Assembly: GCA_950097015.1 (NCBI GenBank)
Contig: CATNEN010000001.1
Span: forward strand, 22,692,001 to 22,756,000
Direction: 5' to 3'
From: Macrostomum hystrix
Lineage: Eukaryota; Animalia; Platyhelminthes
Length of the DNA: 64,000 nucleotides
Shown here: positions 36,872 through 57,487 of the stretch, in pieces
Layout: every line of letters begins with the position of its first letter
Position numbering within the stretch: position 1 is the stretch's first letter
Program-made: the position numbers and the translations under genes
Notes under the pieces: model-generated
Database searches by the model: none
What the model was told of the DNA's origin: nothing
The model's input: only the letters and a program-made list of their open reading frames with translations

Positions 36872-38859
36872 TACTACAGCAACATACCCCAATTTTTAGT
36901 TTATGGCCATAGACGAAGCTCTGACTGCGAGAAGAATACACTAAAGAGATAAGACGGAGGACGGAGGAGATGCGAACTATGCATACATACATACATAGAA
37001 AAAAGACAGGTTTTTTCCGATTTATAAGAACAGCAAATTGAAATTGATAATTTTAAGCCGATGGTCGTTGGAAAAATTTGGCATCATTTGGTGTTGGTCT
37101 CTCATCCCAGTTCGCAACCGTCTAGGAGGAGGTTCGTTACAAACCCGTCCCGCCTGCCCGTCGATGACGTCAGCTTCAGTATTATTAGGATTAACTAAAG
37201 TAAGAATCACTTATAAAATTTAAAACACCTTATTATCTCAGTAAATTAACATTATTGATAAATAATGTAAGCCCAGTATTAATTAGTGACGAGTTTAATG
37301 GAACAAATAGCTAGGTAGAGGAATAGTTACAAATTTGTTTTTTCAGCGGTGAAAAAGCAGATAATTAGTAAATACGGCTTGTGCAATATTCGTAATTTGC
37401 AAGAAAGCAAGAAAAAATTGCTTGCTGAAAAAATATTTAGAAGCTAAATTTGGGTTTTTCAAATTAAATTAGTTTAAATCAAGATAGTTTATCGAAACCA
37501 GAAATTATGGTTAAAATAACTTTGTCTCGTTGATTCCAAACTTTAAGCATCATTCTTACTTTTGCCCACAGAAATTAGATGCAAACAGTATGAATATGAA
37601 GCCGAAAATCAACTGTGAGTTTTGAAAATCAAATTACAACGCGTTTCGCACTCCTAGGTGCATCTTCAGGTTTATTTTGTCAACAGAATGAAATTAAACA
37701 GGTTTTGCGAACTGGTTTAAAGACTATGTTTCAATATTTTTTTATTTATCACTATTTGTAATTTATTGCAAACCATTCTTGGGCTTCTGCATATACGTTT
37801 ATTTCGCCCAGCACAATTTATATTGATTTAAATAGACTGGTCGTTAGCAGCGCTGAGAGTGACCTCGTCGTCTCATAGCCTATAATTTTCAAAGCTCAAT
37901 TGACGGCCTACTTCGTTTTTGAATAGTTGAAAGCTAGCTCACAAACAATAAGTATGTGGAGTTGGGTGTAGAATAACAAAAAAATCAACAAATCAATATT
38001 GGAAACACACGAGTTAGTCCGTAAGGCAGTGTGAAGTCCGGGGGGCAGAAAGAATGTACACACAGTACTCTCTCACATCAAAAGACACGTAGTAGATTAA
38101 CCGCGCCACTATGTTGGAGTTGAGTGTTCAGGCTGGGTGGCTGGGTTAGGTAGGCTTTCTGCCCCCCCGGACTTTGTACATGTCTGGTCGCGTGGCCGCC
38201 TCCCCCCCCCGTGGTGTCGGCTCAGCCCTGCAGCTATTTTACTGTTGCGCGCTGTGGCTTTTACTGGTTTAAACCTTTTGGGCCATTGTGCTGCTGTTTG
38301 TACTCGTACAAAAAAGAAGGAATTTCATTGAGATTGCCACGAGAGTCACCGTTCAGAGTAAGAAGAATTTTTTCTCCCTGACCGGGATACTACCATTTGT
38401 CGTTGGCCAGATTGTACACATTTTGACGCGTTAGACCGCTCTGCCACTGACCCCTAGCCAGTTTTCGCCTGCTACAGCCTCATTTGTTAGGCAAGCAGGA
38501 ATGAACGAGCAGGAAGCCCAGGCTGAGTCACGTTGATCGTTGCCTTCTCTAGCCGTCTCTTCCATTATACGCAGCTCCCGATTTAGACATAGCTCAGATA
38601 ATCAGAGCAGAAAAAGCAAGTACCCATCGTCGAGATTTTTTTAACAACAAAAAATTGCTACCTCTACACTCAAGTGACCTAGTGAGCATTCTTTATAGCT
38701 ATATTCTCTGTATAACAAACACGAAACTGCTCGCCGAAACCTATACTCACACAGATTGCTCAAAAGTGCGATAAGAAACAAGCATTGCACACAGATTGTT
38801 TCTGCACTGAAAGGCGACTGTGCCAACGAAAGGGATTCGCTGTGTTTATAGGCTAAGCC

Positions 38860-41800
38860 ATGAGCGAAGAACCGAGCGTGCCTGAGATCAGCCACCCATC
38901 AGGTGAGTGCATGGGATATGCATTACCAAGCATTGGAACCCAAAACACCTAGCTATCCGTTTGTTCTTCTCATTAGGTGGCTTTTACTAATTGCAGGTGA
39001 CCAAAGACTGGCACTGTTTCTTTCTGAACCAGGTGTGACCCAAACTATTGGGTCACGCAAACTATTGGATCAAGCAAACGATTACTTGAATTTCTTGAAA
39101 ACTTGCGCCTTCAGTGTAAAGCAGCTGCAGCTGCAGAAGGATTTGTGTCTGAAAGACTCAGTGAACGGTACAAAAGAGGAAGTGCAGCAGCTAATCATTG
39201 TTGTCATTGTGAGCGAGTCAGTGGAATACCGCATGGAAACATGTCTAGATTTCATGATCGATCAGAAATTGTGCCAAGACCGTTTTCTATTGTTCTGCCG
39301 AATTAGAAACCCGGTTCAGACATCACCAGACCATCACGACGATAGTTTAGCAAACAACTTTTCGGACACCGATTTCAAGTACGGCAGCGTAATGATCGCC
39401 TACAAGTTCGATACGGCAGATATCATAGGGAAACTTCTTTGCGAGCTTGTTGATGCAAAGAATTCGCATTGGAGCAGTGAATGCGTTTCAGATATTCTAT
39501 ATTCCGATGCAGTAACAATCGGAATGAAAGTTCACCGCAGAAAGCCGGGTATCCGTAAGTTCCTGCGTGATATTATAGAACGACCCACCTGTTCGCTGCA
39601 GGATGAGAGTGCCCAGGAAGTTTCAGTGAAGCCGTGCGTGGAATTGAGCGACGAATGGAAAGATAGAAATGCCAAGCTGATCTACCCGAATGCGCGAGCA
39701 CCCAAAAAACCTACTGTGCTCATCATTTCGAATGTTAACAAAGGCGATAAACTTTGCCAGTCTATCCAGACTGATTTCGAAAGGCTGTGTCGGCTATTCA
39801 AGAAACTCGACTACACAGTGGCAAATGCGCAGACAGACAGTGCGGAAGTTCTAAAGCATAGAGTCGAAGTATTCACCCAATATCCCGATCACGGGGACTC
39901 TTGTGTCCTTGTTGTGCTAGATCAGGGTAATCTCAAAGAATCGCAAGTCGTTGGTATGTTCGAGAACTTGGCCAATAGTGAGATACTACGGGGCAAGCCC
40001 AGGCTATTTATTCTAAATGAGTTTGAGAGCACACTGCAGAGTGACTGCGATTCTGACTCAGTGCCGACAGGCATTTCAACGCTTCTGGCTGACGCCATAG
40101 ACTCCATGCAGAAGTATTTTAGTGTCCAGGATTCCACCATCAAGGTTCACCCGCAGAGTGGCGTAGTGTTTGGTTTTGCTAAAACTGCCGACAGAGCCGC
40201 TGAGCAAGGCAGCCCTTTCATAAAAAAGGTCTGCGAGACCTTCGCTGATTATGGAGGCACAGAGGATGTGGCTTCTATGATCAATTTGATTAATGAGCAT
40301 CCATGGCCCGAAAATAATAGGCCAGTTTGGACAATTCAGACCGTGAAGCTGTTTTACATCACTGATACGACCGGAATAAGCAGTGAGTAGCTTATTTCGA
40401 ATTGACAAATCTCATGTATGGAACAATTTTGCAAGTGAATTCAACGTAACTAAGTAAAAAAATTGCTGGGCAATGATAGATAGACTGCTAGACAATACTT
40501 TTTTAAAGCCTCGTACTCGTACCTTTTTCGCCATGATTTGCAACATTCATGATATATTTAGTACTCCTAGGATGAACTCGTTAGCAAAAAACTACATTTT
40601 GAAATAATTGTACCTCCCATTGTTTATCACCAGCCTCACACCAGGTCGTGTCACCGCAGGAACGGCAACAAGAGAAAAAGAAAAATCACCTAGTTAAATC
40701 TAACGCGGGTAAGTGCAACTGGGGGAGCTTCTTGACGAACAAGTTAGGAAATGCAGTAGAGAACCGGCACCACAACAGCTTACTTTAATGAACATTTTTC
40801 AGACAAAACTGGGTTCGCCATGATTCTGAGCGAGGGCTCATTCGATGCAGCCAGGAACTATCAGACTTTTCTTGAGTACGCCAGCTTTCATGTGCATTTC
40901 GACTTCATATCTGGCGAGATGGCTGCCCTTCAAAAGGCTATCAAATCGGTTCAGGAATACTGTACCGCCACTCTGGCCATCTTTGTTGTATTGCGCAAAT
41001 ATCGCGCTGGTGATGACCTGAATAAGCTCATCAATATCATCAAAGAAACAAGAGAAATGCCGTCAGAAAAAGTAGAGAGTGTGTTGCTAATTTTTTGCCA
41101 GGTAGCTGAACCTACGCTCAACGGCCCGCAAGAGCCTCCGAATCTGGAAACTGAAAGTTTGCCGGAGAAGTTCACAGTTGTGAATGTCTATGGCACAGAA
41201 GAGAAAGTACTAAAGTTTCTCGAATCCATGCTTGACGGTCCAAGAGAGCCCGAAGGATTGAACAACAGTTTTGTTGTTGGCAGGGACTTCAGTGAAGCTA
41301 ATGTTAACGAAGACTGTTTCAACATGACAGTGAACATTCATGATGAAAGGCCAAAATGGAGAAAGAGAATTACCTGGCTAGGTAACTTAAGCGCCCAGGA
41401 CATTGGACCCTCACCTGATCCACAAGTTAGCGATGACACGAGGTACGTTTTGAGAGATGAATTCCGTTTAGAGAAGGCTAGAAAAGAATGGCACCCCTGC
41501 CAAACGATTCATAGTCCTTTGCCAACACATGTACGTCGCGCACTCATTGTGCACAACGTTGTCTTCAAGGTAGAGCCATTCTGCACTCGCTTCGGCAGCC
41601 AGCATGACTGCCAACGCCTAACGGACTGCCTAATGGGGCTCGGCTTCAGAGTCAGCATCAGGTCTAACCTCAGCAAAGCTGAGATCGAGAAGCAAGTGCA
41701 GCAATTTTCTGACAGCGATGATCACAGCAGCACTGCCATTATTGCTTTCCTTTCTCACGGTCGTTTAGGTGAAATCATCGGCTCCGATGGCCTGTCAGTG

Positions 41801-42280
41801 GATGAGAATGAAATCCTAGCAAAATTCTCTAAGGGTACAGGAACTCGCGAAAAGCAGCAGTTGGCCATTTTTCAAACCTGCCGAATTTCACGCAAAGAGG
41901 CTGCGCTTCCGTCAATTTATCCAGGCATGATCATCGCTCACTCTACATCACCTGATGACGTGAGCCTCAGAGTAGCCAACAAAGGCAGTCGGTTCATTCA
42001 GAGCCTATGTACCGTCCTGGACTTATTCGCCACCAAGGATGACATCGTGACTCTCATACCGATCGTGAATTTCGTTATGGTGAACTCAATCTATGACGGG
42101 TTCAGTCAGCTACCCTACTGGATTGTGCAAACTGGGAAGAGACTCGTACTTGGAGAACAAGATAGCCCAAGCCCAAACGCTGGGATCGTGGTTAAAGAGC
42201 CCGGAAGAACGGCAGAGCCAAGACCCCCCTCTGACTGGGCGCCTGTGATTGACATCATGTTTGGTCAGCGGCATCACTAG
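38860..42280 (+). CDS. Tandem caspase gene 1 (pseudo-caspase unit + active caspase unit), ~993 aa. Exons: 38860-38902, 38997-40382, 40634-40708, 40803-42280
   Basis: All three introns are GT-AG, phase 1 and frame-preserving. The first unit lacks catalytic His/Cys (VLDQG, KPRLFILNEF); the second has FLSHG and IFQTCR. Confidence 0.8.
38997..40382 (+). CDS. Exon encoding an inactive caspase-like (peptidase C14) unit
   Basis: PTVLIISN, DFERLCRLFKKLDYTV, HGDSCVLVVLDQG, LRGKPRLFILNE, GSPFIKKVC; both catalytic residues are replaced. Confidence 0.85.
40803..42280 (+). CDS. Exon encoding a catalytically intact caspase (peptidase C14) unit
   Basis: RALIVHN, RFGSQHD, FLSHG, QTCR, IIAHST, SLR...GSRFIQSLC. 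Confidence 0.9.
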
Positions 42281-43640
42281 GGCGATCTGAACGCCCATTG
42301 TGTTGAGACTTCGTTTCATAGTCTCAAGCTAGCGTCTTAAATATATAGGAAAGCCAGCGTGACAAAAGGCAAAATGACAAAAGTAACCGAAATTAGCAGA
42401 GATGTTGATTAAGAACTCTATCCTAATTATTTTTATGCTGCTGTTTTAGCAATGTTTGAGCATCGTGATTCGCTACTGCTACAATAACATTAAATATCTA
42501 CCAAGCTCTCGATTTTAGCATCACCGTACTCAAACTTCATTTCTTCAGTAATGAGCTCTCTCTGATTTCTTAGATTCATTTTCCTTTCGTTTCAATACCA
42601 AAATACTCACCATTTTAGTGGCTTTGAAAATGTTTATCTTGTTAGTTTGCCTGATTTACGAATTTTATAAGCGCTGTTGCTGATATTCCGTTATGTTTGA
42701 TGGCCCTGCAAATCGATTTTTCAACCGCATCAAATTTTCGTTGTGATGTGACCCTGTCACTTTTGTTGAATTTGCCTCCCAATGGGACTTAATGTATTCG
42801 TTATATTTTTGTAATTTGATGTTCTGTTTTTTAATGTAATGTGCGCATTGTATAATGCAAATTGGGTTTAATTTGTTAAACTGCAAATTTCCTAGAAAAC
42901 AACATTTTAATTGGCTATTTTGTAACACTTTCCCTCAACAGTACGGTATTTCAAATTAGCGGAAGGGAAATCAGTTTACTTTCGGACAATACACTTGCTT
43001 CACACGCTGCCGCTCCGAAAAACGTTACCGCTCGATGCTCGCAGTGTAATTCAGTTTTAAAAATTATTATTGTTTACAATTTAAAACAAATGTATTGCGA
43101 ATACTCGAATATTGCGAAACTATTGATAGCGCGAACTTTATCATGTAAAAGAACTATTAAAAACATAATGATACGTTAGAATCGAGCTCGCGTGAAAGCG
43201 GCAAACCTCAAAGTACTACAATTTAATCAGCTAATTAGCTTTTGGCCTTACTTACGTGCACTAACACTTACCAAAAGTATTCTAACACAATACAATAAAT
43301 ATTGAACTGTGTTAGAGGGCGATTGATTTAACTGCTGCACCAAAATACTTCTTCGTCCCATTTTTTTCGTCACAGTGAAGATCAGTTGCAACCTTCAATT
43401 TAAAACTTCCCAAATGTAAACGTCACTTTATCATTTTTCATAAAAGCATATTTTTTAAGCTTGACTGTAATAGCATTGAATGTTTTCCACGTAGAGAAGA
43501 AAGAGCAAAGAGTTGATAGTTGATCTTTTTATTAAATTGTTGCTAAGATAAAAAATTAATTTCAGCACTCAAACTTACCGAATCCGTGGCAAAATAACAG
43601 AAACCTACTCCCGTGCTTCAAAGCAATTTCAAGACAAGTT

Positions 43641-46600
43641 ATGACTGAATCTGCTGACGCTCAAGAGACTAGCCTGCCAGGTACTCACAGTGAAAAAGTA
43701 AAATCTCTGCATATTTTGCCGCTAAATGCTATTCATTTGAATCTTTGTTAAAATTTCAGTGCATCCGGAAGCACAGGAGCCTTCAAGTGAGTCATTCACT
43801 GTTTCCTTCTTTTTAGTTTGCTCGAGGGCTACTCACACTTGTGCTCCTACGCGTTGTTGCACTTGCAACAATTGTTTGTAGTTTTTATGCAAGACAATGG
43901 TAGATTATATAGTATGTTACGGAGTTAAATAATGGCCATAACACGAGTGCGCGAAGCGTGTGCATCGAAAGAAAGGGGCGAAGGCCGAAAATTGTCTATG
44001 GCAATCATCAACCAATGAAAAGGCACGGGGGGAACCGGATGCAAAAGAGTCAAAAACGAAAATAGCCAGAGCCAGAATAGCAATCCATTCTATTCATTCA
44101 TCCATGGAGCCAAGCCAGACAGGCAGATAAGGAGCGGGCTGGGGGTGGGCGCACAAACAGAAGCTTAATTTTGACCAGGCCTTACAATTGGCTCGCGCAA
44201 AAATGCTAACTATAACAAGAAATTATCGATCGCAGAGTTCATGGAGCCTCCGGTCGCATTGCACAAATTGAGCTGGTTTCGTACTCTAACGTTTGCTTAA
44301 AGTAGCCAATAAAACACTTTCAAAATTGGCGGAAATGAATATTAAATTGACAAAATTCCAACATGAGTTAAAACGGCCCTAGTTAGATCCACATTCAATG
44401 ACAACGTCACATCATTTGGTGACACTAGAACCGCAGCCAGCGAGGAGGCAATTCTGCCCAATTCGCTCACTACTGAGCACACACGCATACTGTATGTAAA
44501 CACTCACACAGGTGTGTACATCTGCCCTGACTTTCTCATCGTCAGGCAGTGTACACTTCACTGTGCCTTGGAGGTTGGCCCTCATGGGCATGAATTGCAC
44601 CTCAAGCCCCCCAAGCCTTCTGTCCGCGGCTGCGCCCCAAATAAATGTCACCTCGCTGCGGAATCGAGCTCAGGGACCTTGGTGCGAGAGGCAAACGCGT
44701 TAACCGCTCTGCCACTCACACCCCGATGGTGATGATACATTGGTGGATCGATGATCGTTGATGATCGAGGATCGATGATACCTCGATCCTGGCGCTTGCA
44801 AAGCGCCTGGCCTGGCGCTTTGTCAAGCACTGCCGATCAAGGGCCGCCGATCTATGATAGGAATTGCACATTGTCTTTTTGAACGGTTGGATCAGATGTG
44901 CAGATAGTGGCAAAGCCGCGGCTACAGAGTGGCGCATAATAAAAGTTCTGTGTACAGCTGTTCAGTCAGGCTGAAAACCACATCGACCCGAATTTCTACT
45001 GGCACTTACTGGCTAATACTGGTACAGATGTGACAGCTCTGAAGTGATTGGGAATAGACGTGCTGAATGTCTTATTTTGATAATTGTGGAAAATCCGATG
45101 CTTTGTAAATATGCCAGCTATTGTTAAACGTTACAGAGACTGTCCCTTTGATTTCGTCAGAAAAACATGCACCAGCTGTGGGCTCAGTCAGCAGCGAAGT
45201 AGGTACGAAAAATATCACACAATTCTTTAAGAACTTTTCAACTTTGCGTCAACGATAAATTTCAGTCTAACCTTACGTCTCAGAGCCGATTTCGTTCCAG
45301 TTATCAACCAAACAACGAATTCTGAAATCGTGGGTGCAGAAGTCGACAAGATAGAGTTTGGTAAGCTCCTATTCCGTTGGAAATAAGCTTGGAATTAATT
45401 ATTGCAGTTAAGATCTGTATCACTATCATTTAAAGGATATATCTAAAAGACATGTTCTACTACTTAAAGCTTTCTGATTCTCAGTTTTTTTTATAAATGT
45501 TTGTCAGTCGTCTAATAGAAGCATACTACTGATTGATTTCAGACCATCAGCGCATGTTCTTAGTCTTTGCACAAGCTCCCACTGCGGAGCTAACTGCGTA
45601 CGCCAAGTTCATCGAAAGCTGCTGCTTCCACAAGCAGCAACTGCCTCTGCCCAAGAAGTCATCGAACCTGTTCGAAAACCTCGACTTTAGTCGCCTGCCC
45701 GTGAAGCAGATCGTATGCGTTGTTGTGTGCTCCAGTTCGTCTGCCTGTTGCATGGAAGACTTTCTGAAATTTCTCAGTCGATTCAACAAGGATGTGGATC
45801 AGGTTCTGCTCTACTGCAAGGTGTCCAACTTAGAGGGGGAAGGTAAAGATAAGCCAATGCGCGAGCAATTTAGCGACACAAAATTTCCGTACAAGAATAC
45901 TATAATCGGCTATCATAGGAGTGTCAGCAGTGAAGGCGTAGAGGCATTTCTGCGAAGTCTTCTAATCCAGCAAAAGACAAACTGGAGGGACATGTGCATG
46001 TCTAAGGTTCTGTTAAAAGTGGAAAGCGTATGCAGTGGGAAAACGTACAGTCCTGGATGGAGCGGCAGTACTCGTAGTTTCACGCGCGAAATTCTCTGGC
46101 CTTGCGAATCGCCAGAATCAATTTGCATCGAAGGTGCGGACTCGTTTGAAAACCAAGTCGACTCAAATGTAGTTGCCCCGCTAATCGATTATCTGTACCC
46201 GAACAAACGTGACATGAAGCCGCAGGCCCTCATAGCTATGAATATTTGGAGCTCAGGTGGAAAGCCGCACGCATCAATGCTCGCAGACTGGAAGCTTCTG
46301 TTGTGGCTGTTTGACAAACTGCACTACCAAGTAAAGGACGTGCAAACTGACGCTGCCAAGTACAACCAGCTTAAGGAGTGTGTTAGAAAGTTTGCTGAGT
46401 CCAGTTATCACGGAGACTCGAGTGTGCTGGTTATACTTTCGGAGACCAAACTGACAGCCGATTGCGTCAGCAGCATCAACGATTACATGACACACGGGAG
46501 CCAAATTACTGGAAAACCCAGGCTGGTGATTCTGCAAGATTACGATGCAAAGCAGATTGAATCGGCGGATGCTGCACCGAGTTCGCTCGCCCACTTCCTG

Positions 46601-48870
46601 CCCGATGCTGTGCAATCGATGCGTGACAGGTGGCGCATCTCCCTGCCGGATGAGAGAACTCATCCACTTAGCGGCATGATCTGGTGTCAGTCGACCACCT
46701 CAGTTACCGACTGTGACCGAGGCAGTCCGCTCATGCAGACCATCTGCGATATATTCATCGCCCACTCAGCCTCAGAAGATTTAGTTTCAATGATACCGCT
46801 CATTAATTCAAAGTTAGACCAGATGAAAGAAATTTTACCACTGTGGTGCGTGCAGACCTCCAAACTGTTCTACATCACTAACACAGCAACAGCACCAAAA
46901 AGTAGGTCGGATTTGCTAACTGCACTTCTCGCGATGCTGATAATAAGAAACCTGGTTGGATCTCAGCGCTCTGACTTCATAAAATTTTATCCCTTCCAGA
47001 TGAAATCGTCAGCAATGAGCCAGAAGAACCTCCCGGAACTGACAATGATCCAGGAGGCATTCTCCACGAGTCACACGTAATCTCAGAGGAAGTAGACCGG
47101 TCGCAGCTACCAAAAGATAAGTTCGGTGAGTTTTTAGCGCCCTAGTTTTTATTTCTAGACGTAAATAGAAGGATTTACCAGCGTTCTGATGACTTCCAAA
47201 AACTTTATCCCTTCAAGACGAAATCGTCAGCAATGAGCCAGAAGAACCTCCCGGAACCGACAATAATTCAAGAGCCATCCTACAAGACTCAGAGGAAGTA
47301 GACCGGTCGCAGCTACCAAAGGATAAGTTCGGTGACTATTTTAGCACTCTAATTTTAATTTCTAGACGTGTGAGAAGCTGAAGCAATGCCTTACTGAACT
47401 TTAGACCGGCCTGGCCTAGCCCTAGTTCTCACGGATGGACTTTTCGACTCAGCTCGCGATTATACAATGTTTCTGGAATTCGCCGGCTTTCGTGTGATTG
47501 CAGAGCGCATTGACATCCCGCGACAGTCTGCTCAGGAAGTTATTGCTTTACATCTTCAGCTCGGTGCTCCGAGCTCGAGCTCCACAATTGTGCTGGTCAT
47601 CAGGAAGCTAGGAACTGGTGATCAAGCAGACAGTGTGAAAGACATCATTGAAGCGATGAGAGCTACTTCAAGCGAAAGTGGTAGCTCTCTGCTGATCTAC
47701 TATGGAATAGTTGACCAGACGCCATCCGACATATGCCTACCAGATAATTTGCCGCAGAGGTTCTCAGTTGTCTACCATTGCGACACCGGTGATAAAATCG
47801 ATGTCCGGTTGAGACAGTTGATGAAGGAGCCTCGAAAAAAGCTGAAAAACACTATTTTGGCTGCGTGCGACTTTAAGAAACTAGCAAGGAAGGATGGAGA
47901 GCCTAAATTTACGTACAAATCGACTGACAGTAAGCCGGACTGGAGTTACACAATCAAGTGGCCCAGAAGTCGAGATATCAGAGGCGAGGAAAATAAGAAA
48001 GATGACCTGTTCTGTACAGCAAGCATGAGAAAGATGTGGTTTCCTGGGCTTGATTCTCAAGCTACCGATGCTCAAATAACAAACAGAGCCTTAATAGTTC
48101 AGAATGTAGTCTCTCAAAGCAAGGGCAAACGGGAAACGCGACTCGGAACCCAGAACGACTGCCAGAGACTAACCGACAGCCTGACGCGACTTGGTTACAG
48201 CGTATCGATCCGATCCAACCTGGCAGCAAATGAGATTCTGCAGGAGGTAAAAAGCTTTTCGGCAGCCAATAATCACGGTCGCTCGTGCGTTGTGGCAATC
48301 ATGTCTCATGGGTACCTCGGCGAAATCATGGACTGCAACAATCAACGGGTGGACGAAGCCGAGATTCTATCGAAGGTTCACGGTGGTAGCGGAATACAAG
48401 GAAAACAGAAGCTAATCGTCTTTCAAGCTTGCAGGCCGCTCAGAAAAGGCCACTTGACAAGGCCATGGCATACCATTCACTCCGACATGATCATCGCTCA
48501 CTCAACCTCACCAAACCAGTACAGCTACCGAAACAAGGTGCAAGGCAGTAGGTTTGTTCAAAGCCTTTGCTCGGTTCTAGATGAGTTCGGATCTGAAACA
48601 GACATTGTTACACTCATCAGTTTCGTGAACTTCATGCTGTTGAACTGCTTTTACGATGCCAAGCGTTCCAATCAGACAGACACTCAGCTACCGTTCTGGC
48701 TTGTTCAGACTAGAAGTGCCTTTGTTCTCGGTAATGTGAGACGAAACCGAAATGCTGGCTGCGCCGTAAGTGTTCCGGATGAAGAGAAGCCAAAAAAGTC
48801 AAAGTTTTCAGTCTCGGCTAGACTGGCAAGATTTTTCGAAATCTTTCGCCAACAAAAAGACGAGCTGTGA
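43641..48870 (+). CDS. Tandem caspase gene 2 (pseudo-caspase unit + active caspase unit), ~1077 aa. Exons: 43641-43680, 43760-43786, 45161-45202, 45301-45360, 45543-46901, 47000-47125, 47218-47331, 47405-48870
   Basis: All introns are GT-AG and phase 1, and the joined frame is open. The first unit lacks His/Cys (VILSET, KPRLVILQDY); the second has IMSHG and FQACR. The small 5' exons are less certain. Confidence 0.75.
44412..44724 (-). mobile_element. SINE family A, inside a predicted intron of caspase gene 2
   Basis: Reverse complement of the 35274-35585 and 679-757 sequences, including the A/B boxes. Confidence 0.82.
45543..46901 (+). CDS. Exon encoding an inactive caspase-like unit (paralog of 38997-40382)
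   Basis: QALIAMN, DWKLLLWLFDKLHYQV, HGDSSVLVILSET, GKPRLVILQDY, HPLSG, GSPLMQTIC, WCVQTSKLFYIT. Confidence 0.85.
47405..48870 (+). CDS. Exon encoding a catalytically intact caspase unit (paralog of 40803-42280)
   Basis: RALIVQN, RLGTQND, IMSHG, QACR, DMIIAHST, SYR...GSRFVQSLC. Confidence 0.9.
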
Positions 48871-49029
48871 CTACTCACCATTTTTATCCGACACTACTCA
48901 CTATCTCTCGCTATTTTAATATGAAAATAAATAGTTTTAATTAGATCAAGGTCTTCAATAAGACCCTGAGATCACTTAACGCTCCCTATATGCCTGTTGC
49001 AATCCAACATTTTATTTTAAACTCCATCA

Positions 49030-50835
49030 CATCTAAATCCCTCCCATCGAATCTAACACCCTCGCATCACATCTAACACCCTCGCATCACATCTAACACC
49101 CTCCCATCACATCTAACACCCTCGCATTACATCTAACACCCTCGCATCACATCTAACACCCTCGCATCACATCTAACACCCTCCCATCACATCTAACACC
49201 CTCGCATTACATCTAACACCCTCGCATCACATCTAAAACCCTCGCATCACATCTAACATCCTAGCATCACATCTAACATCCTAGCACCACATCTAACATC
49301 CAAGCATCACATCTTACACCCTCCCATCACATCTAACACCCTCGCATTACATCTAACACCCTCGCATCACATCTAACACCCTCCCATCACATCTAACACC
49401 CTCGCATTACATCTAACACCCTCGCATCACATCTAACACCCTCCCATCACATCTAAAACCCTCGCATCACATCTAACATCCTAGCATCACATCTAACATC
49501 CTAGCACCACATCTAACATCCAAGCATCACATCTTACACCCTCCCATCACATCTAACACCCTCGCATTACATCTAACACCCTCGCATCACATCTAACACC
49601 CTCGCAACACATCTAAAACCCTCGCATCACATCTAACATCCTAGCATCACATCTAACATCCTAGCATCACATCTAATAACCTCCCATCACATCTAACACT
49701 CTCCCATCACATCTAACACTCTCCCATCACATATAACACCCTCCCATCACATATAACATCCTCTCATCACATCTAACATCCTAGCATCACATCTAACACC
49801 CTCCCATCACATCTAAAACCCTCCCATCACATCTAATAACCTCCTATCACATCTAACACCCTCGCATCACATCTAACATCCTAGCATCACATCTAACATC
49901 CTAGCATCACATCTAATAACCTCCCATCACATCTAAAACCCTCCCATCACATCTAAAACCCTCCCATCACATCTAACACCCTCGCATCACATCTAACACC
50001 CTCGCATCACATCTAACATCCTAGCATCACATCTATCATCCTCCCATCACATCTAACACCCTCGCATTACATCTAACACCCTCGCATCACATCTAACACC
50101 CTCCCATCACATCTAAGACCCTCGCATCACATCTAACATCCTAGCATCACATCTAACATCCTAGCATCACATCTAACATCCTAGCATCACATCTAACAAC
50201 CTCCCATCACATCTAAAACCCTCCCATCACATCTAAAACCCTCCCATCACATCTAACACCCTCGCATCACATCTAACACCCTCGCATCACATCTAACATC
50301 CTAGCATCACATCTAACATCCTAGCATCACATCTAACATCCTAGCATCACATCTAACATCCTAGCATCACATCTAATAACCTCCCATCACATCTAAAACC
50401 CTCCCATCACATCTAAAACCCTCCCATCACATCTAACACCCTCGCATCACATCTAACACCCTCGCATCACATCTAACACCCTCGCATCACATCTAACACC
50501 CTCCCATCACATCTAACACCCTCCCATCACATCTAACACTCTCCCATCACATCTAACACCCTCCCATCACATCTAACATCCTAGCATCACATCTAACATC
50601 CTAGCATCACATCTAACACCCTCCCATCACATCTAACACCCTCGCATCACATCTAACACCCTCCCATCACATCTAACACCCTCGCATCGCATCTAACACC
50701 CTCGCATCACATCTAACACCCTCCCATCACATCTAACACCCTCGCATCACATCTAACACCCTCCCATCACATCTAACACCCTCGCATCGTATCTAACACC
50801 CTCCCATCGCATCTAACACCCTCGCATCACATATA
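49030..50835. repeat. 20 bp satellite (CACATCTAACACCCTC[G/C]CAT)
   Basis: About 90 in-phase tandem copies between caspase genes 2 and 3. Confidence 0.97.
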
Positions 50836-51544
50836 GCACCGCCAACACATAAATTGTCACGAAGTTAGACTTCTTGTTCCCTAAATTATGTTTCATTGCT
50901 TGTATTGCTCTATCTCCCATGTAGGATATGTCTACCCTATATTTACAGTTTTTAATAAATTCCAAAATATTTTATTCCAGCGATCTTACGCCAGTTTCAT
51001 AATAGTTGTTCTCGAAAAATTCTACAAACGCTTTAGCTACAACATCTGGAATGTTAAATGATTGTTTTTTATTTCTTCAATTATTGTTCCGCTAGAAATA
51101 AAAAACAGCACTGTACAGCGCTCTATACCTAACTCAGTGGGAGCTCATTTTTTAATGACTTGGTATTTTCTTTTGAATTGACAAAACTCTGAGGGCGTTT
51201 TGAGTCTAGAGGCTCTAGTCTCTGGCCTTCTATGAGGGGGGTGTAGATGGATGTAAATTTAATTATAATCCCGCAAGTCAATACTAGTATTAAGATTTAA
51301 CTAGGGTATACCCCCGTTAGGCAGAGGATGCAAAATTTAAACACAATGAAAATGCACATATTGAAGCCACAGGTTCTCCTTTTCTGGCACACAATTCTGC
51401 AAGCAACGTGTCTAGTGGCAGGTAAAAGGGTACGATGTAGGTCTATAAAAGCAGTACAATCCATTTTTAGTTAATTTAATTTCAAAAGCTTCGTTAGCTT
51501 AACATTTTGGAATAAAGAAAATCTTTGTAGTTTTCAAAATTCGA

Positions 51545-53326
51545 ATGAGCGAACAATGCGACACAACTCAGACGTCGAGCACGGCTAAAGCGCTTCCATG
51601 TGAAGGTGAGGCTCCTCTTGCAATTCCCGCCTTCAAAAATCCGTTCATACGCGATGTTTTTCGGCAGAACTTTCAGCACAAAACAATTCTTGTTTTATTC
51701 ATTGGAAACAGTTTTTAGTTCAAAAACAATATGGAATTTAATGTAAAAAAGTTCATTCCATTTTCAGAGCCTATTGATCCAAAATCATTTGATCTGAAAC
51801 CTGACGAGACTATGAGCATTGGCGAAGGACAATGCAGAGCCGTCATATTCAGCAAGCTGTGCGGCAACCAGCTCGACGGCTTCGCTGAAGTCAGCGACTA
51901 CGGCCAGTATTTGGACAGTTGTGGCTTCATTGTCAACTATGAGACGCCCGCTGACTTGAATCACGTCAGGAAGGTGATTACTGAGGCAGCCAAGGACGCT
52001 AAACAGCTTGTCGCTCTCTTTCTGATCGAGTCCGATCAGGAGACAGGTCTTGACAGCGTCGTCGAGTGGCTTCGAGAGGCGAACGATGCCGCTCAGAAAC
52101 TGCTAATTCATTGCAGAGTCTCAGCAACGGAAGCCGACGAGAAAGCGGACTGCGTCAAACTCATGCCGCCGACCGAGTGCCGAAAGATTCTCCGCAACAT
52201 TGTGCTCTTCAGCGTCGCAGTCAAGGCTAGAAAGGAGGCGCACAGGTTTCTGAGTGTTTTGAAGGATCTGCAGCAGAAGAGCTGGTCTAAAAATGGACTG
52301 GCTCATCTGATTCAATACGACATTGAGACTGATGTTTATGAGAAATTCAAGCTAAAGACACAGAACGGTCTCTCGAGTGAGTTCCTGCAGCCCCCGCAGC
52401 CCATCAAGATGCTGAAGGACAGGGAAGAATTCATGAGGATAATAGGCGACGGCACTCAACTGAGACAGCTAGACCCGAGCACTATCGAGAGCTTGAAGAA
52501 AGACTCGAACCCAATGGAGAGCATTGTTTACCCAATAGATTGCATGACAGCAAGGAAGAGAGCCCTCATCATCCACAATGTCGAATTCCTGCCACCTACC
52601 AGCAACAGGCCAGAAAGCTACGTGGACTATAAGAACCTGCACCATGTTCTGACACTCCTGCAGTTTGCTGTCACCGAGAAAGTCAACCGAACTGCTGCAC
52701 AGATTCGCGAAGACATCAGAGAATTCGCCAATGATGAGTGCCACGGAGATGTCTGCGTCCTCGCCGTCATGTCCCACGGCAGCCTCGGGGCTATCTGTGG
52801 CACCGATTATAGGTGCGAAAGCGGAACTGGCTTACTATTTGAGTCCGAGATCATCAGCCTTATGTGCGATGGAGCTGTAAAGTCAAAGCCTAGACTGCTT
52901 CTGATCCAAGCCTGTCGCAATGACTCAACCAGGTCTCAGGCCCTGACCGCGTCGGAAAAGACCTGCGCCACAATGACAGAGATGGCCATCCAGGTGGGCA
53001 TTCACTACGGTAATCCGGCTGAAAATGCCGAGCCCCCGCCAGATCAGAGCGGCCTGGTTGTCGCGCACTCCACTTCACCCGGATACTCTGCGTTCCGCAG
53101 TCGCTACGGCAGCCGATTTATTCTCGCCCTGTGCGCAGTCTTCTACGAGCTCGCTCACAAGGAGGACTTGCTGTCAATGATTACTAGAATTAACTTCATT
53201 ATGCTGAACGGCTTCAAACGACCAGAGCTGGATGGAAAAGTTCAGTCACTTCAACTGCCATGTTGGACAGTTCAAACGCACAAGAAGTTCTTCTTGGTTG
53301 ACACCAGTCCTCTGTTTAAAGATTAG
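51545..53326 (+). CDS. Caspase gene 3 (degenerate caspase-like N-domain + active caspase), ~539 aa. Exons: 51545-51605, 51768-53326
   Basis: RALIIHN, VMSHG, KPRLLLIQACR, VVAHSTSPGYSAFR, GSRFILALC. A phase-1 intron follows a short MSE... leader exon, as in gene 1. Confidence 0.88.
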
Positions 53327-55060: not shown

Positions 55061-55943
55061 GCCCCGCGCCATCGGCCGAAGCAGGTATTTCAGGGAGGGA
55101 TTAGCGGAATGGGCGACCCCCGCCTCCCCGCTGTGTCCATCGGACCGCCCGGCAGATAAGTCAAGCGTCCGGTGTCGAAATCGGACAAAAAACGGGTGAT
55201 TTTCGTCCGCTTCTGAAAGTTGGTCAGAAATCGGACAAGCAACCGGACGAAGGTCCAGGTGGGTAGCCTGCCGGTCTGTCACATCTGCCAGGTCGAAGCC
55301 TCACAACATTGAAAATCAATAGAGAAAGGACGTCATAAAGCAAAATATGTACCTCCTTGTAACTATCCTGTATTGTCATGACGCTTCCAGTAGCATATCT
55401 GATGCATAAATTTCCAATCCATATATTACAAAATTGAAGTACAACTCAATGCTTTTGTGACAGCCATGGTCCCATGGCTGTGGCAACCATAAAATGGAAT
55501 GGAAATGGAAATAGAAACCAGAAAATGTTTTTTACATTGTGAAGTTTTGACCTTGTGTGAAGTCTTTTGCTAGAGTTTTCGGCATTGTGAAATTTCGAGT
55601 TTGCGAAATCCGCCGTCTATTACTACACACTGAGTTAGAGCCATTGTGCTAAGAAGAAATAAGGAAGTCAAACTCAAAACAATTCGTCCATTTTTTAGTT
55701 GAATCAGGTTTCATTTTAAGAAATTGAAGAATTTTTTGTTACCTATGGAAGTAAAACAGTGGCTACTCAGGAAAAGCTAGGAATAAATATGCTCACTACA
55801 CAGCTAGAACTAGTACAGTTAGCAAAAACTGGTACAACTAAATATATATTTACCGTACTGCCCATAGGAAAGGGATTTTCGATTTTGTAGTTCTTTAAAA
55901 ATGTCGGGTTCGAAGAAAAATGGAATCCATTGTCTTCGAGGAG

Positions 55944-57487
55944 TCAGCAAGAGTGGTTCCTTCTACGGCTGGCAATTGTGTTGAGCAGCCTGGCGGTGCT
56001 AACCAAGAAGACCTTCTTGTGGGTCTCCACGTCCAACTGCATATCTGCTGCGGCTGGCTTATTCCGTTCAGCTGAGGCTGCCTGAAGCCGCGAACCATGA
56101 TGAAATTGATCCTGTTAATCATCGAGACCACGTCCTCTTTGTGCGCGTACTTGTGGAAGGTGGTGCAGAGGGCTAAGATGAAGCGGCTGCCGTACGGGCT
56201 GCAGAAGCCTTGTTGGCAAGGGGCTGTGCAATGAGCCACAATCAGCCCACTTTGGGGTGCAGGACCTGGAATCACCTCCTGCAGAGGGTGACAACCATGG
56301 ACGGAACCTGTCCGTCCGCGAAGCGCGAGATGCTTCCGACTTTCTGGTCTTTGGTGTCACAGGCACATCTCGGCAAGCCTGAATGATTACCAGCCTTGGC
56401 TTAGCTCTCACAGTTCTCCCGTTTCTCATCAAGTTGATAAGTGCGAACTCGCTCACTAGTACATCTCTTCCGCCATCGGCATAGTCGATCCCGCATATTC
56501 CGTCCAGACGGCCGTGAGACATGATGACGAGAATGCAGGCTTCTCCGTGTGTAGTTTCGTTGGCGAATGCCGACACTATGTCATTAATTTCTTGAGCAGT
56601 CTTGTTGAACTTCTCTTCCACGGTAATGCTCATGAGCTGAAAAACGTGCTTTAAATTCTCATAGTCACTTATGCTAGACAATCTGTCACTAAGATTACGG
56701 AAGGTCATGTTGTGGATGATGAGCGCATGCTTCGTTGCTCGTGGTGGCTCACAGTAAACTAGATAGGCTGGAGGATCTTCGGAGGCCTTCAGAGTTCTGA
56801 CAGTTTCTGGATCCAGTGCCTTGAGATGGTCGCCCTCACCAAACTCTTTCGCCAGTTCTTTGTGCAGCAACTTGACTACCGGATGAGGCGCGTGATACTC
56901 ATCCAACAGTCCATTGACAGCTTTGATCTTGAACTTGTGGCTCTGCTCGTCAGTAATTTTGAATTGAATCAGGGGGCCAATTCCTTTAGAGAGCCAACAT
57001 ATTTCCTGCATTTTTCTCAACTTGCGTATGAACTTGCCAATTCCCTGGTCTCGATGGCGATGCTCAGAATGGCCGAGTTGCGCAGCTTCTCCTTACTTTG
57101 GACCGGGAGCTGCGGCTTCTTGCAGTCGGCAGATTCGAAATCAGCACAACTTGAAATTCGGCAGTAGATCAGCAACTTATGGACCGTTTCGTCCACCTTC
57201 GAAAGCACTGTTACAGTTTGGTCCAGATCGCTTGCTTTTTCCCTGTCCGTCAGGACGAGGACAACTAGCTTCTTGACGCCCTTGGCGGCGGTGGCAGTGA
57301 TTTTATCCTGGATGTCTTTGGCATTCCTTGATTGGTCATATTCGATGCTGAAGCAGCAGTTGATTAGGTAAGTCTCGTATTCCTCTAGCTCTTTCTCCTT
57401 GCCCATAGAGAAAATGATAGCTCTGTAGATATCGGCTTTGGCTCGTTGCGCTAACCATATTTCAGCGTTCCTAAAGTTTAATGGCAT
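55944..57487 (-). pseudogene. Caspase gene 4, inverted paralog of gene 3, with three frameshifts (pseudogene or assembly indels)
   Basis: HALIIHN, IMSHG, KPRLVIIQACR, GSRFILALC. Frame changes at ~57040, ~56300-56360 and ~56030; the corrected C-terminus WTVETHKKVFLV matches gene 3 WTVQTHKKFFLV. Confidence 0.8.

Follow-up and report, generated by a model that had tools for sequence, protein, structure and literature searches.

The 64,000-nucleotide stretch of the Macrostomum hystrix genome analysed here (the window; GenBank assembly GCA_950097015.1, contig CATNEN010000001.1, positions 22,692,001 to 22,756,000, forward strand) encodes a cluster of caspases, the N-terminal domains of which we read, with a probability of about 0.72, as strongly diverged and dead caspase-fold domains of ~180 residues, gene 3 being a two-fold chain and genes 1 and 2 four-fold chains. 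Five long plus-strand open reading frames (ORFs) of the window each carry a Pfam Peptidase_C14 domain at the C-terminal end: those of unit 1 (u1; 38903-40390 as listed) and unit 2 (u2; 40820-42280) in gene 1, those of unit 3 (u3; 45533-47080) and unit 4 (u4; 47467-48870) in gene 2, and that of gene 3 (51731-53326). No Pfam match at E 1 fell within the initial 170-240 residues of each, which hold the N-domain. A sequence-only reading of the window had proposed that this region, in the place of a prodomain, is a further degenerate caspase fold, and the proposal is supported by an AlphaFold2 model of the gene 3 N-domain and by two structure searches that rank caspases first. Judged by this model, N-domains of the gene 3 type (g3-type) very probably have the caspase (clan CD) fold, and not that of a CARD, DED or TIR domain.

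The modelled stretch comprises gene 3 residues 30-222 (51818-52396), predicted from an alignment of 11 sequences, all from Macrostomum. Since the query-aligned columns hold N-domain residues only, there is no leakage of the caspase domain into the model input. The model reached a predicted local distance difference test score (pLDDT) of 84.0 and a predicted template modelling score (pTM) of 0.86, with the five models all at pLDDT 80.6-84. Its elements run in the order b1, a1, b2, a2, b3, a3, b4, a low-confidence loop, a short helix, b5, a long a4, a5 and b6, and the same order was found for the N-domain in a second AlphaFold2 run on full-length gene 3 with a different alignment (pLDDT 70-85). 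Thus defined, the gene 3 N-domain (residues 34-212; 51830-52366, plus strand), a predicted dead caspase fold, ends slightly beyond the 52330 assigned to it from sequence, the last strand being residues 209-212, at about 52366.

When the model was compared with the PDB by Foldseek, caspases occupied all listed ranks to 48, and the paracaspase MALT1, at rank 49, was the first non-caspase. The top matches were zebrafish caspase-3, caspase-6, caspase-7, CED-3, Sf-caspase-1, caspase-9 and caspase-8 (E ~1e-6, prob 1.00, TMq 0.54-0.66). An independent structural aligner (VIA) was run against 48,161 representative chains, with the top 50 listed. It scored CED-3 at 15.6, the c-FLIP(L) protease-like domain at 15.3 (root mean square deviation 2.8 A over 166 residues), pro-Sf-caspase-1 and caspase-4 at 15.0, caspase-8, caspase-9 and Dronc at 13.9-14.5 and MALT1 at 13. 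Metacaspases, legumain, GPI8 and a CHAT protease scored 10-12.7, while the first chains from outside clan CD, an uncharacterised H. pylori protein, a designed protein and short-chain dehydrogenases, scored 9.2 and below; among these top 50 there was no TIR, receiver or death fold. The structural match spans the whole N-domain, with 166-179 aligned residues that include a4-a5-b6. Aggregated, the predicted domain shows the hallmarks of the clan CD fold: six strands with helices on both sides, the caspase order of elements, and top matches that belong to clan CD. The absence of a death-fold domain, also claimed from sequence, agrees with this alpha/beta model and with Pfam, which detected neither CARD nor DED in any unit or M. 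lignano homologue. The TIR and death-fold readings of the N-domain were rejected on model topology, Pfam and the structural match lists.

The proposal had been built on a by-eye alignment of the N-terminal part of gene 3 with its own catalytic domain. The motif pairs are indeed present in the ORF at 51731-53326, namely RAVIF/RALII, DYGQYLDSCGFIV/DYKNLHHVLTLLQFAV, VRKVITEAA/IREDIREFA, LVALFL/VLAVM, KLLIHCR/RLLLIQACR, NIVLFS/GLVVAHS and RFLSVL/RFILAL, and the LLxxC[RQK] motif recurs as FLLFCRI in u1, LLIFCQV in u2, VLLYCKV in u3 and LLIYCRI in gene 4 and its paralogue, with a degenerate LLIYYGI in u4. With deep profiles of 14 N-domains and 14 caspase domains, local hhalign returned a score of 26.2 (P = 0.0043), matching N-profile positions 7-105 to caspase-profile positions 17-140, from beta1 to beta4, in the register of the by-eye alignment. 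None of 100 column-shuffled controls reached this score (11.0 +/- 3.0, maximum 19.8), and the reversed profile gave P = 0.41. Taken singly, two of three subfamily profiles give an N-C match (P 0.018 and P 0.0007). Global-mode hhalign was erratic, with 5 of 100 shuffles, outliers among them, above the real score, and local mode alone was used. The sequence echo between the two halves is marginal and depends on alignment depth. As the by-eye alignment is marginal as sequence evidence, it is structure prediction that carries the caspase-fold claim.

The N-domains appear dead by their catalytic positions. Cys128 of gene 3, in LLIHCRV on strand b4 (codon 52112-52114, plus strand), occupies a nearly invariant column of the N-domain alignments, which falls on the catalytic-Cys column of the caspase domains in the hhalign alignment. 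This Cys is present in 13 of 15 distinct N-domains, the exceptions being u4 and, in M. lignano, the second N-domain of P0003. It is kept within LLxxC[RQK], while the QA and G context of the catalytic QACxG is gone. The catalytic His (SHG) after b3 is absent from every N-domain, the segment reading ESD, TDN, SES, SSS, RKY or RKL. The alpha1-beta2 core motif DY..FL..CGF.V is retained and the active-site loops are shortened. The low-confidence loop between b4 and b5 (52130-52171, plus strand; pLDDT 61-69, model blocks 101-120) lies at the position of the caspase intersubunit linker. Its residues 134-140 in gene 3 (52130-52150) hold a conserved E[KS]ADC in g3-type members, and most other members have an Asp there; that this is a relic of an Asp-directed cleavage site, or a working one, is speculation. 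The N-domain is followed by a linker of ~60 residues with several Asp (52367-52552, plus strand), mostly disordered (pLDDT <50 for residues 214-274 in the full-length model), and then by the active caspase domain of gene 3 (52553-53293, plus strand; SHG, QACR), which matches PF00656 at E 2.6e-33 and, in the PDB, CED-3 and caspase-3 at E 1e-17 to 1e-15.

The domain modelled in gene 3 has relatives in every unit of the cluster. Three subfamily profiles were built separately: g3-type (gene 3, gene 4, the gene 4 paralogue described below, M. lignano P0002 and P0007), first-unit type (u1, u3, P0003a, P0004 and P0006) and second-unit type (u2, u4, P0003b and P0008). Each profile recovers the other two (per-comparison E 1e-5 to 1e-20; hhalign prob 94-98.5%), the u4 N-domain being the weakest (profile E 8.8e-5 and 1.2e-3), and these profiles establish that the N-domains of the window are all homologous. 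They are conserved element by element from b1 through b5 into the beginning of a4, with hydrophobic strands and amphipathic helices kept across the three divergent subfamilies. Beyond a4 the second-unit type continues in a longer tail of its own, which lies outside the model; the caspase fold of the u2 and u4 N-domains is therefore proposed from homology over ~150 residues.

In gene 1, the u1 N-domain (38997-39560, plus strand; g3-type profile hmmsearch E 1.3e-16, hhalign prob 98.5) precedes a pseudo-caspase domain at 39716-40294 (plus strand), in which SHG is replaced by DQG and QACR by NEFE (Pfam PF00656 E 2.6e-10; PDB CED-3 E 4e-7). The u2 N-domain (40802-41370, plus strand; profile E 2.7e-8, hhalign prob 95.8), alignable from b1 to a4 and divergent in its C-terminal part, precedes an active caspase domain at 41534-42127 (plus strand; SHG, QTCR; Pfam E 8.9e-27). 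Analogously, in gene 2 the u3 N-domain (45541-46130, plus strand; profile E 3.4e-18, acceptor and frame read) is followed by a pseudo-caspase domain at 46283-46864 (plus strand; SET, QDYD; Pfam E 4.9e-6), and the u4 N-domain, the most divergent, with Cys replaced by Tyr in LLIYYGI (47405-47960, plus strand, from the in-frame translation), by an active caspase domain at 48085-48657 (plus strand; SHG, QACR; Pfam E 7e-33). The first strand of the u4 N-domain, GLALVLTDG, and its DY motif (RPGLALVLTDGLFDSARDYT) are encoded in frame a little before the listed Met, after a likely acceptor site; the truncated look of this domain is thus an artefact of ORF listing. In the alignment of caspase domains, those of u1 and u3 lack both catalytic residues, and SHG and Q[ATG]CR are kept in u2, u4, gene 3 and the paralogue of gene 4. 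By these residues the u1 and u3 caspase domains are dead, and those of u2, u4 and gene 3 are of active type and, as far as sequence tells, ordinary animal caspases.

That the two units of gene 1 form a single chain is evident from transcripts. Assembled contigs of three public runs (X2-X4) from one study match 38800-42400 at 100% identity, and they skip three GT..AG introns, at 38903-38996, 40383-40633 and 40708-40801. The reading frame was checked exon by exon. Exon 1 (38860-38902, plus strand; joint 38899/38902 to 38994/38997, GT..AG, in X2-X4) opens with an ATG at 38860 and comprises 14 codons and a single base, the Gly codon begun by that base being completed at 38997. The unit 1 exon continues to 40382, a 74-nt micro-exon (40634-40707, plus strand) is open throughout, and unit 2 follows in frame from 40802, the two units being joined by the GT..AG joints 40382 to 40634 and 40707 to 40802 in X2-X4. 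The spacer that the micro-exon encodes, SHQVVSPQERQQEKKKNHLVKSNA, is rich in Lys and Gln. In the listed u1 ORF, the first 31 residues (VSAWDMHYQ...LLIA) correspond to the intron at 38903-38996, and the real N-terminus reads MSEEPSVPEISHPS. The 40382 to 40634 joint is also present in short contigs of a second study (X1), which cover 39200-42130, are 95-99% alike and carry an 8-base deletion at 42003; the fused gene is thus also expressed in a related strain or species. Gene 1 is one spliced protein of ~993 residues, with an N-domain, a dead caspase domain, an N-domain and an active caspase domain in that order. As 14 residues precede the first N-domain, there is no room for a death-fold prodomain in this protein.

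The same N-C-N-C layout is found in the 1017-residue M. lignano protein P0003, and gene 2 looks to have the four-fold layout as well. A small exon similar to that of gene 1 seems to be present in gene 2 near 47000-47080. Two caspase domains per chain, the first inactive and the last active, are thus recognised by sequence in u1-u2, and by predicted fold in gene 3. The claim of two caspase folds in genes 3 and 4 and of four in genes 1 and 2, arranged dead-dead-dead-active, holds up on N-domain homology, catalytic residues and the splicing of u1 to u2, with gene 4 being frame-broken. The N-domain and caspase domain of the latter (55895-57487, minus strand), delineated by comparing its ORFs with an intact paralogue, are split over three frames, with breaks near 57020, near 56275 and near the 3' end. 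The close paralogue, at G000:C1:25.73 Mb, is a single intact ORF of 517 residues; either gene 4 became a pseudogene recently or its assembly contains errors. Between genes 2 and 3, a 20-bp minisatellite (CATCACATCTAACACCCTCG; ~91 copies, 91% matches) occupies 49025-50840 and accounts for the strong negative GC skew there.

Several observations weigh against reading the N-domains as dead caspase folds in two- and four-fold chains. The fold rests on one predicted model from the 11-row alignment of one genus, and the type modelled is that of gene 3 only, the u2/u4 type being unalignable after alpha4. Pfam, PF00656 included, gave scattered noise only for seven N-domains at E 10, with the C-halves alone matching C14; BLASTP of the gene 3 N half against the C half found nothing (E > 5); shallow-alignment profile-profile comparisons of N with C gave P = 0.24 and P = 0.4; the profile of subfamily B, taken singly, yielded no N-C match; and an N-domain profile picked up no ordinary caspase among 1.84 billion representative proteins. 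The full-length AlphaFold2 model of gene 3 has a pLDDT of 62.5 and a pTM of 0.45, and its interdomain geometry is unreliable. Moreover, the 691-residue M. lignano protein P0004 consists of an N-domain, a pseudo-caspase and an active caspase, without a second N-domain, and the second dead fold is therefore dispensable in some paralogues.

The lack of robust C14 similarity in BLASTP, shallow profiles and Pfam would also suit a generic module of Rossmann/flavodoxin-like or TIR-like kind with no kinship to caspases, in which case the caspase matches would reflect only a shared three-layer sandwich. In the same direction point the UniRef name of M. lignano P0005 (A0A1I8GM93), 'TIR domain-containing protein', and the search of the N-domain profile against PDB sequences, where among chance-level matches only (one being a Rab effector coiled coil) the best with a meaning for the fold was a designed 'Rossmann 2x3' protein (E 0.076). 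We nevertheless hold such a module to be very unlikely: TIR domains are missing from the top 50 structural matches, Pfam finds none in P0005 (E 0.1) or in any N-domain (E 10), and the match covers the C-terminal a4-a5-b6 part, which flavodoxin-like folds lack. The label of P0005, which combines an N-domain with a pseudo-caspase, is probably a marginal automatic profile match. Marginally less likely again is an AlphaFold artefact of the shallow single-genus alignment, the true fold of the N-region being another or partly disordered. ESMFold2, run without an alignment, failed to fold the N-domain, and the ESM Atlas held no usable neighbour of it, both of which favour an artefact. The agreement of the five models, the recurrence of the order of elements in the second run, the conservation of strands and helices element by element in three divergent subfamilies, and the alignment columns free of caspase-domain residues all speak against it. 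The dead caspase fold hence remains our preferred reading of the N-domain.

As to what the dead fold does, it may act on the adjacent caspase domain as a built-in partner or regulator, a role that we put forward tentatively, at less than even odds, by analogy. It is the most likely role because c-FLIP(L) and coral caspase-X are the nearest precedents. Pairing would be sheet to sheet, between the dead fold and the active one at the b6 edge, on the pattern of c-FLIP(L) with caspase-8 and of the caspase-X model, and would let caspase activity be adjusted with no adaptor platform in flatworms, for which an absence of FADD is reported. The sequence-only reading had looked to AlphaFold and Foldseek for a caspase-fold match that packs on the neighbouring caspase domain; the match was obtained and the refuting outcome, a confident model of an unrelated fold, did not arise, whereas the packing was not readable at the pTM of the full-length model. 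A complex prediction of the gene 3 caspase domain with the N-domain scored 0.00, a run in which ESMFold2 left the partner unfolded, alignments were unused and controls were not included, and the score counts in neither direction on binding. The main alternative, somewhat less likely, is that the caspase-like fold acts as a removable or recruiting prodomain, by intermolecular oligomerisation or as an inhibitory cap cut at a linker Asp, and not as an in-chain b6-b6 partner. The disordered, Asp-containing linker between the two domains of gene 3, the lack of a confident interdomain arrangement in the full-length model, the composition of P0004, and the recognisable pseudo-caspases of u1 and u3 in genes 1 and 2, which offer the active domain an alternative partner, are all in its favour. 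No result obtained here counts against it, but the dimer interface is where dead caspase folds act when their function is known, as for c-FLIP(L), or modelled, as for caspase-X (PMC4715348). The strongest form of a built-in partner, already raised from sequence, is that these are adaptor-free caspases. Their dead folds would pair in cis with the adjoining caspase or pseudo-caspase domains, the four-fold chain forming two internal pseudo-dimers or a single tetramer-like core resembling the (p20/p10)2 of a mature caspase, with activation by linker cleavage or a conformational switch and not by a platform of the FADD/Apaf-1 type; this we regard as unlikely.

The best comparisons for the proposed arrangement are found outside flatworms. 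To our knowledge, c-FLIP(L) and the inactive domain of coral caspase-X are the only well-studied dead caspase folds. The protease-like domain of c-FLIP(L), a human pseudo-caspase (PDB 3h13, 3h11), resembles the N-domain, as predicted, in combining a caspase fold with an incomplete catalytic dyad. c-FLIP, however, stands as a polypeptide of its own, bears tandem DEDs and can still be identified as a caspase from its sequence. The N-domain is part of the caspase chain itself, lacks a DED, escapes Pfam and usually retains a Cys in the catalytic-Cys column; its pairing with the active domain is only proposed. Separase (C50, clan CD) has a degenerate caspase-like domain directly N-terminal to the active protease domain in one chain; it differs from the N-domain proteins in family, size and partners, and there was no separase among the listed structural matches. 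CARD and DED prodomains share the position ahead of the protease domain and, presumably, a role in regulation, but they are all-helical six-helix bundles, unlike the alpha/beta N-domain with its six strands. The c-FLIP(L) dead fold pairs with caspase-8 through the b6 edge. Caspase-X of Acropora (CASc*-CASc) is likewise one chain with an N-terminal inactive and then an active caspase domain; deletion of the inactive domain, modelled on the c-FLIP/caspase-8 dimer, raised killing, and one A. digitifera caspase-X prediction has four caspase domains (PMC4715348). Both domains of caspase-X are seen by standard sequence models, making it the counterpart of the u1-u2 and u3-u4 pairing, whereas the flatworm N-domains would be an additional, far more diverged layer, found only by structure prediction; the likeness drawn here is one of layout.

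The family appears to be narrowly distributed. The nearest public proteins of the cluster are all from M. lignano, at 55-61% identity. The N-domain profile gave seven matches among the 1.84 billion representative proteins, all from M. lignano and all with caspase or pseudo-caspase domains, and a word-based homologue search returned two M. lignano proteins only. The M. hystrix genome holds seven N-domain copies, six in the window and one 3 Mb away, each adjoining a caspase domain. On these searches, the N-domain family is found only in Macrostomum. A 2024 survey of lophotrochozoan caspases detected no FADD in flatworms and described, as an unusual prodomain in M. lignano, only a kinase-like one (PMC11463336); the N-domain thus seems undescribed. 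Literature searches found nothing on flatworm pseudo-caspases or tandem caspase domains. Regarding origin, a later duplication of the whole N+C unit is well supported, since both halves are homologous between units. For the older step, we infer that the N-domain arose from a duplicated caspase domain, as suggested by its predicted fold, by the scores of animal caspases above those of other clan CD members and by the marginal in-register profile match. Two nested internal duplications, as claimed from sequence, are therefore plausible, with fusion to an already diverged pseudo-caspase gene as a possible alternative origin.

By the usual account, initiator caspases are brought together through a helical recruitment domain and an adaptor platform. 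Fusions of a pseudo-caspase with a caspase are already known, and what is notable here is the crypticity of the dead fold and the four folds per chain: a dead caspase fold, as predicted, in the prodomain position, missed by standard annotation and present up to twice per chain beside a recognisable pseudo-caspase. Should the dead and live folds pair, these proteins would be a compact natural model of how pseudo-caspases tune caspases, and would reveal a route to caspase control in a lineage without FADD; adaptor-free pairing in cis, if true, would be a new solution to initiator-caspase activation. More generally, invertebrate 'caspases with unknown long prodomains' merit re-examination by structure prediction.

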